From assembly GCA_943704425.1 (NCBI GenBank), contig CALSCP010002426.1:42565-106564 (forward strand): a DNA stretch of 64,000 nt, given 5' to 3'. The translations under genes and the position numbers were made by a program. Below are positions 20,030 through 22,030 of the stretch, piece by piece; within the stretch, counting starts at the first letter, position 1; each line of letters starts with the position of its first letter. The notes below the pieces were generated by a model. That model was not told the DNA's origin. It searched no databases and worked only from the letters and a program-made list of their open reading frames with translations. Origin of the DNA: Ministeria vibrans ATCC 50519. Lineage: Eukaryota > Protista > Filasterea.

Positions 20030-21258
20030 TCAGACGAGACTCTCTTTGACAATCGAGTACACGTAGAAGGTGATGGCCACGTTAGGCACTGTCTTTATCC
20101 AGTTGAGCGTGATTCCCCGATACCTACACAACAGAACGAACCATAAATCAGTAGTGGTCCTCTATCACTTTGCATCTATCACTTTGGTTCGTTCTCCCTC
20201 CTTTTGCCCTCTTCCTCTTTTCCTCTCTCTCTCTCTCTCTCTCTCTCTCTCTCTCTCTCTCTCTCTCTCTCTCTCTCTCTCTCTCTCTCTCTCTCTCTCT
20301 CTCTCTCTCTCTCTCTCTTTCCATTACTTTGCTTCTTTCTTCCTCCTTTCTCTCTCTCACACACACTCTCTCTCCCCCCTCCTCTCCCACTCTGTCTCGT
20401 CTCTTACAATCCATTCAAGAGCCCTTCGTTGCGCCAGATGGTCGCAAGGCCGCTGATCACGCCGGTGTAGCGACGGGCGCCGTCGCCCTGGATGAGTCCC
20501 TCGGTCTGAAGACGACGGCGCATGACGTCGAAAGGGTAGACGACCGACTGGGCCAGCAGACCCGCTACTGCGCCACTCACCAGCTTCATGGTGCCCGTTG
20601 GACGCTCAATGCCAGCTGTGGTCGCAAGGAACAGCGATAGCGCCTCATACGACGCAAATTTGAGGCCAGCGTAAGGCGCGACGCCCATCATGGTTGCTGA
20701 CATGCCTCGGTACAGCGCACGCACACCCTTCTCACGCGCAACCGTCGTTAGCGCATGCACGATGCCCTTGTACCGCTGCGTGCCCTGGCTGGCCGCTAGT
20801 CGTGCACGTACCAAGTCCAGCGGGTATGTGCACACAACGCCCGTGAGACCGCCCAGTGACCCTGCCGTCAAGTTGACGGCCGTGGTACCACCGCGCTCCT
20901 GCATTCCCGCCGCGCGCAGCGCGATTCGGTACTCTTCAAAGCTCGAAAAGGTGATGGCCGAGTGTGGCAGGACACGCACAACGGCGGCAAAATTGCCACG
21001 CCACAGTGCAAGGGTGCCCTCCTCGCGCACAATGCGCGCGGGAATAGGCACAAAAGAGTCGAGGGCGTTGATTTGGTAGATGATCTTCACTCGTTCAATA
21101 GGCGCAATGCATGTGCGTGCTAAAAAGAGAGACAGAGACCAGGTAGGATGTGAGCGGTGAGAAACGCCAGGCGCGGCGGGCTTCTTCTTGTACTTACCAA
21201 CCACTCCGGCAAATCCACCGGCCAAAAGATACTCTTTGAAATTCTGACTGTCGCCCAT
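20030..21258 (-). CDS. Mitochondrial carrier, SLC25A42/SLC25A16/Leu5 (CoA transporter) type
   Basis: LLAGGFAGVV|ARTCIAPIERVKI, LWRGNFAAVVRV, TYPLDLVRARLA, PYAGLKFASYE, YPFDVMRRRLQ, |YRGITLNWIKTVPNVAITF. Two introns. Confidence 0.9.
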
Positions 21259-21264
21259 AATGTA

Positions 21265-22030
21265 CTAGAAAATGTCACCGAGCGTCGTGTCGTTGCTGTA
21301 GAACTGAGTGAGGCGTTGTTGTTGAGAAGTCAACGAAGAAGAAAAAGAAGAAGACGAAGACGAAGACGCGGAGGAGGTGGTGATGGTGGTGGTGGTGGGA
21401 CCAAAGATGGAGCCGATGGGTGCGCCGGGATGAGTGTCGTAGCGTGCGTTGAGACGGGACGCAATCAGGCCGAAGAAGGTCTGAAGATCTGTTTGCGGCA
21501 GAACGGTTGTCTCGTGGATGTCAGAGCGCAAAGTGAACTTCCAGCCAAGATGCGCAGAGCAGACAGGGCAGGCGGCAACAGTCCAGGAGTAGCCAGGGAA
21601 CCACGAATAGTCGGAGATGGGATGACCTCGCAGGTGAACACTCGCAGCAGCAAATGTGATCACGTCAAAGGTGACGAGTTGAGGATTGGTGAACCGCTGG
21701 ACGAGAGCGTCGCGATCGCCGAAGAGAGTGGCGTTGAAAGCGGTGGCGGAGGGCGCGGCGAGAAGATTGATGAGCGAATCGGCCGGAGCGATGGTTTGGC
21801 CACAGGCACAGGTAAGCTGCTGACCTACAGAGATGAGACGCACGGGTGTGATGATCCAGGCGCATGCCGGCCAGGAAGAAGGCCGTGGAGATGGTGATTT
21901 CGTAAGGGGGCGCATGACACAGCAATGGGAATGCGATCATCGGACACGCGCTACCTTGCACGGGGGCGGGGAACGCGAGCGCGGTGAGTGTGACAAGGAG
22001 CAATTCAATCAGAGATGCCGATCGTCTCAT
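21265..22030 (-). CDS. Secreted cereblon-like CULT-domain protein
   Basis: Signal-peptide exon (MRRSASLIELLLVTLTALAFPAPVQ) spliced to LTCACG...FTNPQLVTFDVIT...YSWFPGYSWTVAACPVCSAHLGWKF...FFGLI, followed by a Thr/Ser-rich tail. Confidence 0.85.

Follow-up and report, generated by a model that had tools for sequence, protein, structure and literature searches.

On the minus strand of the window (the whole stretch of 64,000 nt that was analysed), a gene for a CULT-domain protein with a putative signal peptide is followed after only 6 nt by a gene for a mitochondrial carrier. We consider it probable that the two form one bicistronic mRNA, on which the carrier ORF would be reached by leaky scanning. 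Direct reading of the minus strand at the junction gives ...GGTGACATTTTC TAG TACATT ATG GGCGAC, in which the CULT stop codon TAG (21267-21265) ends CULT exon 2, the gap TACATT occupies 21259..21264, and the carrier start codon ATG (21258-21256) lies in the same frame as the stop. The initial annotation had placed the two codons in frame and 6 nt apart, and both statements stood when the coordinates were re-read; the shared frame has a one-in-three chance of arising at random and carries no evidential weight. The same annotation had described tandem pairs here as separated by AT-rich spacers, and this holds where it was measured: the spacer from the stop of SQLE, the gene upstream, to the CULT ATG is AT-rich and 274 nt long.

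Both gene models are supported by homology; the searches were run with separate exons, and joined models served only for ATG counts and frame checks. CULT exon 1 (21955..22030) contains the start codon and a signal-peptide-like N-terminus, MRRSASLIELLLVTLTALAFPAPVQ; hydrophobic leaders are also present in homologues. It is followed by an intron of 130 nt (21825..21954, GTAGCG...CTGTAG), where all three ATGs between the two starts are located, and by exon 2 (21265..21824), which comprises the CULT domain, a Ser/Thr-rich tail and the stop, and is free of ATG in any frame. Because AGs between the donor and the region of CULT homology occur only at 21826-21817, these three ATGs are intronic in any model that joins leader and domain. 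The ORF has 211 codons (636 nt), and the coding score in the frame of exon 2 is positive all the way to the stop. Upstream lies the SQLE-CULT spacer (22031..22304), from which the bicistronic transcript would presumably take its promoter and 5' leader; in the 300 nt before the CULT ATG the GC content is 0.42 overall and 0.25 in the poorest 60 nt, there is an A/T run of 17, and no ATG occurs in the final ~230 nt ahead of the CULT start.

An exhaustive protein search with the CULT exon returned 1986 relatives, and chains of the cereblon thalidomide-binding domain match the protein with an E value of 8e-16; a word-based protein search with the same exon gave no match, self included. Residues W74, W80, W94, C7, C85 and C88 are invariant in an alignment with eight homologues (A1). 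The protein thus has the family's three cage tryptophans and its two zinc-binding cysteine pairs in a domain of about 100 residues, the first pair being C-A-C, not CxxC. A search of its own genome found no CULT paralogue. The homologues in this alignment end ~20 residues past the F-GLIL motif, and the matches of the remaining relatives also end near query residue 124, but the protein here continues into a C-terminal extension of ~40 codons (21268..21390), CT-rich DNA read as Ser/Thr, that is absent from the eight aligned homologues and appears to be lineage-specific. Secreted CULT-only proteins are known from animals (Lupas et al. 2015, PMC4287342). The protein resembles these in having an N-terminal leader and a single CULT domain with three cage tryptophans and zinc cysteines; unlike them, it has C-A-C in place of CxxC in the first zinc knuckle and a Ser/Thr-rich C-terminal extension of ~40 residues, and it apparently comes from a unicellular relative of animals.

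The carrier gene has three exons. Exon 1 (21198..21258), MGDSQNFKEYLLAGGFAGVV, begins with a start codon in strong context and is followed by intron 1 (21120..21197, 78 nt, GTAAGT...TTTTTAG), which coincides with an exact 26-residue BLASTP gap against the homologue P0004. Exon 2 (20408..21119) encodes the Mito_carr repeats (Pfam PF00153, 9e-50, three stretches), intron 2 (20124..20407, 284 nt) contains a long (GA)n repeat and ends in TAG, and exon 3 (20030..20123) encodes a C-terminus like that of the homologues and ends with the stop codon TGA (20032-20030). The joined model of 288 residues terminates in ...LYRGITLNWIKTVPNVAITFYVYSIVKESLV, which matches the homologues, and is 49% identical to P0004 across its full length. 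The position of the start codon is fixed, since homologues begin 9-12 residues ahead of the EYxxAGG motif. With three Mito_carr repeats, ~290 residues and a short N-terminus, the protein has the makeup of an SLC25 carrier. Its best relatives are ~52% identical, and several are named SLC25A42 or Graves disease carrier; for the two proteins of the window that had matches, the protein databases held nothing above about 52-56% identity. By the names of its closest relatives the carrier would be of the SLC25A42/SLC25A16 type (CoA-type), and a role in the transport of CoA or adenosine 3',5'-diphosphate, to which only these names point, is putative. The sequence TGTAATGTAA (20001..20010), 19 nt past the carrier stop, may be the 3'-end (poly(A)) signal for the transcript as a whole.

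According to our proposal, a promoter upstream of CULT would give rise to one spliced, polyadenylated mRNA with both ORFs. Most scanning 40S subunits would encounter the CULT AUG first, and a fraction of them would pass it because its context is poor, with T at -3 and A at +4 (ccgtgaATGa). As no further AUG occurs across 642 nt of mature RNA, the subunits that pass would arrive at the carrier AUG and initiate there in a good context, with A at -3 and G at +4 (tacattATGg).

In the spliced RNA, the stretch from the CULT start to the start of the carrier has no ATG in any frame, where 5.15 are expected from dinucleotide shuffles (P(0)=0.0014, a value to be read, like those below, in light of the test having been picked post hoc, once the sequence had been seen). 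None of the 2197 windows of 639 nt each in 30 kb of other coding sequence, which averages 13.8 ATG per kb, is free of ATG. The CULT protein has no internal Met, and when its codons were resampled synonymously, 3.6 out-of-frame ATGs were expected (P(0)=0.013). The CULT intron has its three ATGs in 130 nt, and the carrier coding sequence has 11 in 867 nt. Part of the depletion is to be expected anyway, because CULT domains are generally poor in Met (0-3 in homologues). ATG-free runs of at least 580 nt number five in the 128 kb of both strands: one falls within a single gene, in its 3' part, and stops at that gene's intron-corrected stop codon, while, judged by position, another lies inside an ORF of 1796 residues and two more extend across a gene end or upstream of a gene start.

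The location of the depletion bears on the main rival explanation, an internal promoter within the upstream gene, which was missing from the alternatives listed in the initial annotation. In that case the two genes would be separate, overlapping transcription units, with the carrier start site within CULT exon 2, for example just past the CT-rich tract of the tail, and with the CULT mRNA ending inside the carrier gene. We regard this as a possible but doubtful account. For exon 1 plus the domain part of exon 2 (457 nt), 5.1 ATGs are expected (P(0)=0.0015, from the same post hoc test), and for the tail only 0.34. Since the depletion thus sits upstream, in the domain part, a start site inside the tail would not account for it, and an internal promoter would leave the ATG-free domain part (P about 0.0015) as well as the weak context of the CULT start unexplained. 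In favour of an internal promoter, this is a compact genome, with 76 nt between the convergent stops of the carrier and the adjacent gene; several ordinary starts are closely preceded by CT-rich tracts, and the CULT tail has such a tract 70-115 nt before the carrier ATG. Against it, the 300 nt upstream of the carrier hold no AT-rich stretch.

This last point emerges from a comparison of upstream regions. The 300 nt before the carrier have a GC content of 0.53, their longest A/T run being 5, and those before the four second-cistron starts have a GC content of 0.52-0.65 and A/T runs of 4-6. Upstream of ordinary starts, the minimum 60-nt GC is 0.05-0.30 and the A/T runs are 7-44; AT-rich stretches precede all first or single starts. 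At the 3' side, 8 of 12 terminal genes (a small calibration set) have TGTA, a candidate 3'-end motif, within 40 nt past the stop. TGTA is absent for 140 nt past the stops of both CULT and MOCS2A, which in the case of CULT also speaks against an internal promoter, and it is absent from the 16-nt gap of the APC16-like/CMC4 pair.

The weak first start recurs at the other candidate first cistrons. T is found at -3 in all three (CULT, APC16-like and MOCS2A), whereas ordinary starts have a purine there in ~12 of 14; a Fisher estimate for the difference is ~0.015, on a small calibration set of about 14 ordinary starts. Because genes of the Ras and carrier families are intron-rich, these families contributed just six usable additional start codons to the calibration, and T at -3 also occurs in one ordinary carrier start (C1130). 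The sequence CCGTGAATG, the start context shared by CULT and the APC16-like gene, was considered as a general start motif and rejected, as three other copies are not gene starts.

Other close pairs in this genome show that the combination of features is not confined to CULT and the carrier. MOCS2A (ThiS, ending in GG) and MOCS2B (MoaE) are separated by 60 nt; 381 nt of their mature RNA are free of ATG, and the intron has two; the first start has T at -3, and the second A at -3 and G at +4. This pair is a positive control with the same signature as CULT/carrier, which is also displayed by the APC16-like/CMC4 pair. An epimerase gene and a gene for a secreted protein, only 12 nt apart, serve as the negative control: ATG density is normal and an AT-rich intron lies directly upstream of the junction. 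Tight spacing by itself therefore does not yield the signature. This pair also lends the internal promoter support, as it is most likely such a case, with the AT-rich intron as promoter; at least one tight pair being clearly without a leaky-scanning mechanism, internal promoters do occur in this genome. At least three loci here, MOCS2 among them, carry the full leaky-scanning signature.

The initial annotation had also noted that the TAG at the junction resembles a 3' splice site. This is so: TAG also closes each of the three introns in the two genes, and TTTTCTAG at the junction is similar to local acceptors, with no comparable site at the MOCS2 and epimerase pairs. An AG close to a start codon is also frequent by chance. 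Two rival explanations make use of this site. In the first, alternative cis-splicing would join the exon 1 donor (21955/21954) to the TAG at 21265, used as an acceptor, which would leave out the CULT exon and give a carrier mRNA with a short leader. The similarity of ACATTTTCTAG to the real acceptors of both genes, all ending in TAG, and a branch-like TGAC motif just upstream of the junction fit such an event, but the pyrimidine tract is short and the ATG-free exon 2 would be left without a reason. Moreover, the skipped isoform keeps the CULT ATG, out of frame and overlapping the carrier ATG, so that leaky scanning would still be required and splicing would not dispense with it. We consider this explanation unlikely.

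In the second, the junction would be the acceptor of a spacer-less spliced-leader (SL) operon in a unicellular relative of animals, the pre-mRNA being cut at the TAG and the carrier given a capped leader. The spacer-less SL operons of tunicates and the SL1-type operons of C. elegans have almost no intercistronic sequence and an AG acceptor at the junction; they depend on an SL RNA and on a poly(A) signal immediately upstream, occur in large numbers in the genomes concerned, and do not feature ATG depletion. CULT/carrier is like them in its near lack of a spacer and in having an AG, in an acceptor-like site, precisely at the junction. It is unlike them in being ATG-depleted and in lacking AATAAA or TGTA just upstream, neither motif occurring within the last 60 nt of CULT. 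In addition, neither the ATG depletion nor the weak first start would be needed, the ATG-free first cistron becoming a coincidence, and the gaps of the other tight pairs (MOCS2, epimerase) are purine-rich or acceptor-less. A search of Rfam with 19000-24500 gave no match, which says little on an SL RNA gene, and we know of no description of SL trans-splicing in unicellular relatives of animals. An SL operon is thus highly improbable here.

Readthrough of the TAG, or a sequencing error at this codon, would produce a CULT-carrier fusion protein. The common frame of stop and start would allow this, but it is a one-in-three event by chance; carrier homologues begin 9-12 residues ahead of the first helix, none of six long relatives in which the CULT domain is N-terminal contains a carrier domain, and it is not plausible that an inner-membrane carrier should be headed by a signal peptide. 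To our knowledge, TAG-TAC-ATT matches no known readthrough context. We give a fusion hardly any credence.

Of the four alternatives in the initial annotation, then, the bicistron with leaky scanning is the one supported, by the ATG depletion, the weak and strong starts, the lack of an AT-rich spacer and of TGTA, and the likeness to MOCS2. The SL operon and readthrough found little support, and cis-splicing from a shared 5' exon is possible only, as it leaves the ATG-free exon unaccounted for. Against a bicistron, the first ORF, at 211 codons, exceeds typical first cistrons, and the CULT and carrier proteins have no known functional link.

Nuclear bicistronic mRNAs, once held to be exceptional, have since been documented in green algae and some fungi as well as in insects and mammals; the CULT/carrier arrangement is probably of this known but rare eukaryotic type. 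The three sequence diagnostics of this type are found at the locus: a short gap without promoter-like or 3'-end signals, an under-representation of AUG, and a weak start followed by a strong one. Human MOCS2 is bicistronic and translated via leaky scanning (PMC9607355); for the animal gene, that paper cites Stallmeyer et al. 1999. As in animal MOCS2, two unrelated ORFs on the same strand are separated by a minimal gap (or overlap), and the first cistron has a weak start and is AUG-free. In MOCS2, however, the pairing is ancient and unites subunits of a single enzyme, whereas CULT and the carrier are unrelated in function; the CULT ORF has twice the length of the first MOCS2 ORF, and distant relatives do not show the two genes side by side. 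On the contigs with the closest CULT and carrier genes the neighbouring genes are others, and these contigs therefore provide no conservation test of the adjacency.

The bicistrons of the green algae Chlamydomonas and Auxenochlorella and stoned/Snapin of Drosophila have been tested experimentally and share the same three diagnostics (PMC11892635). The inter-ORF distance has a median of 40 nt in Auxenochlorella and is 14 nt at REX1 (PMC11892635). CULT/carrier shares with these loci the short gap, the weaker ORF 1 and stronger ORF 2 context, and the AUG depletion. It differs from the green-algal loci in the length of ORF 1, 636 nt against a median of 291-357 nt (PMC11892635), in its holozoan-like host, and in being known from its sequence, the algal loci having been proven by Iso-Seq and mutation.

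As to the origin of the arrangement, the last ~40 codons of CULT, the CT-rich Ser/Thr tail, are not present in aligned homologues, and we therefore propose that the CULT frame was probably lengthened through a former spacer. If confirmed, this apparently young pair, with its unusually long first cistron bearing a putative signal peptide, would show the birth of a bicistron, in which a frame overruns the spacer and selection then purges upstream AUGs. The ancient MOCS2 pair in this protist would date the bicistronic arrangement to before animals. The locus would also, if confirmed, provide a sequence rule for genomes without RNA data, namely a tight gap, an upstream mRNA free of ATG, and weak-then-strong starts, and it carries a warning for annotation that the CULT and carrier genes should be neither merged nor truncated. 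The squalene epoxidase (SQLE) of this genome is closest to those of Capsaspora and vertebrates.

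The upstream gene on the minus strand has two exons (22030-21955 and 21824-21265) separated by a GT..AG intron of 130 nt (21954-21825). Exon 1 encodes a hydrophobic leader, MRRSASLIELLLVTLTALAFPAPVQ, and exon 2 a CULT domain with a match in the PDB to cereblon's thalidomide-binding domain (E value 8e-16). The three cage tryptophans and the zinc cysteines are retained, the first zinc knuckle being C-A-C rather than CxxC. An exhaustive search returned 1986 relatives, mostly small proteins of 140-210 residues; the homologues that were fetched have hydrophobic N-terminal leaders and end about 20 residues past an F-GLIL motif. 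Secreted CULT-only proteins are known as a family from animals (PMC4287342), and the product of 21265-22030 is, judging by these features, a secreted-type CULT-only protein. Ahead of the TAG it carries about 40 extra C-terminal residues, a Ser/Thr-rich stretch whose coding DNA is CT-rich, and a score of codon usage, trained on the window, remains positive in the CULT frame as far as the stop. The homology searches used single exons; joined spliced sequences served only local counting scripts.

The downstream gene, on the same strand, encodes a mitochondrial carrier of 288 residues (exons 21258-21198, 21119-20408 and 20123-20030; Pfam Mito_carr, 9e-50). The closest relatives share about 52% identity with it, the named ones being of the SLC25A42/SLC25A16 type. 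Its start codon is well fixed, with homologues beginning 9-12 residues ahead of an EYxxAGG motif, and its first intron appears as an exact 26-residue gap in BLASTP. Intron 2 is largely filled by a long (GA)n dinucleotide repeat (20230-20345); CT/GA repeats like it come up again in introns and spacers elsewhere in the window.

The junction on the minus strand reads ...GGTGACATTTTC TAG TACATT ATG GGCGAC, with the CULT stop at 21267-21265 and the carrier ATG at 21258. On re-reading, the coordinates, the 6-nt gap and the common reading frame of the two codons reported in the initial annotation were all correct. With the carrier start well fixed and both gene models supported by homology, the coding sequences truly abut. 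That this leaves no space for a carrier promoter, as had been proposed, is borne out by base composition: the 300 nt 5' of the carrier ATG have a GC content of 0.53, a minimum 60-nt GC of 0.40 and no A/T run longer than 5, whereas the same interval 5' of ordinary or first-cistron starts contains AT-rich stretches (minimum 60-nt GC 0.05-0.30, A/T runs of 7-44). TGTA, often as TGTAA or TGTAT, occurs 14-35 nt past stops in the window and at other loci, and is a candidate polyadenylation signal in M. vibrans. In a small sample of 12 terminal genes, 8 have it no more than 40 nt past the stop, among them the carrier (TGTAATGTAA, 19 nt past its stop); none follows the CULT stop across 140 nt. The junction would appear to offer neither room nor signal for separate expression of the two genes. 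At its other end, the carrier TGA (20032-20030) is 76 nt from the TGA of a convergent plus-strand neighbor (ending at 19953), so that their 3' UTRs can only be overlapping or very short; TGTA motifs are present on both strands of 19953-20032.

A bicistronic mRNA read by leaky scanning is the arrangement that we consider probable. Mature RNA counted from the CULT ATG up to the last base ahead of the carrier ATG spans 642 nt without a further ATG in any frame, against 5.15 expected from dinucleotide-preserving shuffles (P(0) = 0.0014, in a test picked, like all the depletion tests here, only after the sequence had been read). Elsewhere, 30 kb of coding sequence in the window has 13.8 ATG per kb, with 0 of 2197 windows of 639 nt being ATG-free; the carrier CDS has 11 ATGs in 867 nt, and the spliced-out CULT intron has three. 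When the CULT amino acids are held constant and synonymous codons resampled from local usage, 3.6 out-of-frame ATGs are expected (P(0) = 0.013). The CULT protein has no internal methionine; since CULT domains are Met-poor anyway, as the fetched homologues indicate, we place the overall probability of such depletion at about 0.001-0.003. The start contexts point the same way: the CULT ATG is flanked by T at -3 and A at +4, the carrier ATG by A at -3 and G at +4. A purine occupies -3 in 12 of a small set of about 14 ordinary starts fixed by homology or position (window genes, Rac, Rab8, Rab11, Ran and two other carriers). T at -3 is likewise found at the start of an ordinary carrier, C1130, which makes the context suggestive, not diagnostic.

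The main rival, an internal promoter for the carrier, would suit a compact genome, yet we judge it unlikely. It is at odds with the weak CULT start, with the missing AT-rich sequence 5' of the carrier and with where the ATG depletion sits: exon 1 and the domain-coding part (457 nt) account for 5.1 expected ATGs (P(0) = 0.0015), and the low-complexity tail for merely 0.34. Depletion in the domain part fits ribosomes scanning from the CULT cap, because a carrier transcript started in the tail would select nothing there. No ATG-free run in the window is longer than that at 13003-13676 (673 nt, plus strand, partly CT-repeat), which ends at the start codon of a YTHDF-like gene and may be that gene's long leader without upstream ATGs.

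As within-genome controls, we located and examined four further tight pairs on other contigs. At L043 (G000:C2399:99433-102771, 1027-1917, plus strand), MOCS2A, a ThiS-family protein ending in GG, precedes MOCS2B (MoaE) with a gap of 60 nt. The 381 nt of upstream mature RNA are free of ATG, and the intron contains two; at the MOCS2A start, -3 is T, and at the MOCS2B start, -3 is A and +4 is G. Human MOCS2 is a textbook bicistronic gene translated via leaky scanning (PMC9607355), which makes this pair a positive control; it has the same signature as the CULT/carrier locus and suggests that the animal-type bicistronic arrangement is present in this protist. At L007 (G000:C2236:20818-23934, 2135-1479, minus strand), an APC16-like spliced ORF of 68 codons lies 16 nt from CMC4, with zero ATG in the 365 nt between starts and a start context, CCGTGAATG, identical to that of CULT. 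At L006 (G000:C656:72289-76062, 569-1280, plus strand), a NAA38-like LSM-domain ORF (stop 1037-1039) overlaps QTRT2 (start 1032) by 8 nt and retains one in-frame ATG; the 300 nt 5' of the QTRT2 start have a GC content of 0.65 and no AT-rich stretch. This pair may represent termination-reinitiation or another bicistron.

The fourth pair, at L073 (G000:C1674:201539-204748, 2930-700, minus strand), lacks the leaky-scanning signature. A GlcNAc 2-epimerase-like gene ends in a TAA 12 nt ahead of, and in frame with, the ATG (957) of a second gene, whose product begins like a signal peptide. ATGs are as frequent as usual in the upstream gene (46 across 1973 unspliced nt, and 10 in the first 281). Its last intron is AT-rich and falls less than 150 nt from the second gene's ATG, which makes the use of an internal promoter probable. 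Overlapping transcription units thus do occur in this genome, which suits the internal-promoter reading of the CULT/carrier locus; the pair equally implies that close spacing by itself does not yield an ATG-free upstream gene.

The initial annotation had left four alternatives unranked. ATG depletion, the weak and strong starts and the likeness to MOCS2 favor leaky scanning on a bicistronic mRNA, and the other three find little support. Alternative cis-splicing, with CULT exon 2 skipped from a common first exon, is improbable: it would require leaky scanning past the CULT ATG all the same and gives no cause for an ATG-free exon 2. Spliced-leader trans-splicing of an operon, which we regard as very improbable, would render the depletion pointless; a 3'-end motif ahead of the junction is absent, the MOCS2 and epimerase gaps are not acceptor-like, and tight pairs are uncommon. 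Readthrough of the CULT TAG, or a sequence error there, is the least credible and has no support; none of six long CULT relatives examined joins CULT to a carrier.

In Chlamydomonas and Auxenochlorella, bicistrons that have been curated and tested by mutation are recognized by ORFs set close together (median distance 40 nt in Auxenochlorella, and 14 nt at REX1), a weak start context at ORF 1 and a depletion of AUGs ahead of ORF 2, and Drosophila stoned and Snapin have the same three features (PMC11892635). CULT/carrier displays all three. Its first ORF, at 636 nt, exceeds the algal medians of 291-357 nt (PMC11892635).

About 130-190 nt separate the carrier ATG from the point where CULT conservation ends, a normal spacer size here, and the CT-rich CULT extension resembles tracts 5' of several ordinary starts. 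In the simplest history that we infer, the ancestral CULT stop would have been lost, the frame extended across the former spacer, and ATGs purged from the upstream message. On synteny, suggested earlier as a check, the CULT/carrier adjacency is absent from the distant relatives inspected; the protein collections searched contain nothing close to the window proteins. The squalene epoxidase encoded next to CULT is closest to that of Capsaspora (56%), then to those of vertebrates (53%), which fits a unicellular relative of animals. The assembly comprises 29.7 Mb in 2860 contigs. Two gaps of 10 N fall in the window, at 15734-15743 and 27045-27054, the latter within sequence of extreme AT content (GC 0.135 at 27000-27300).
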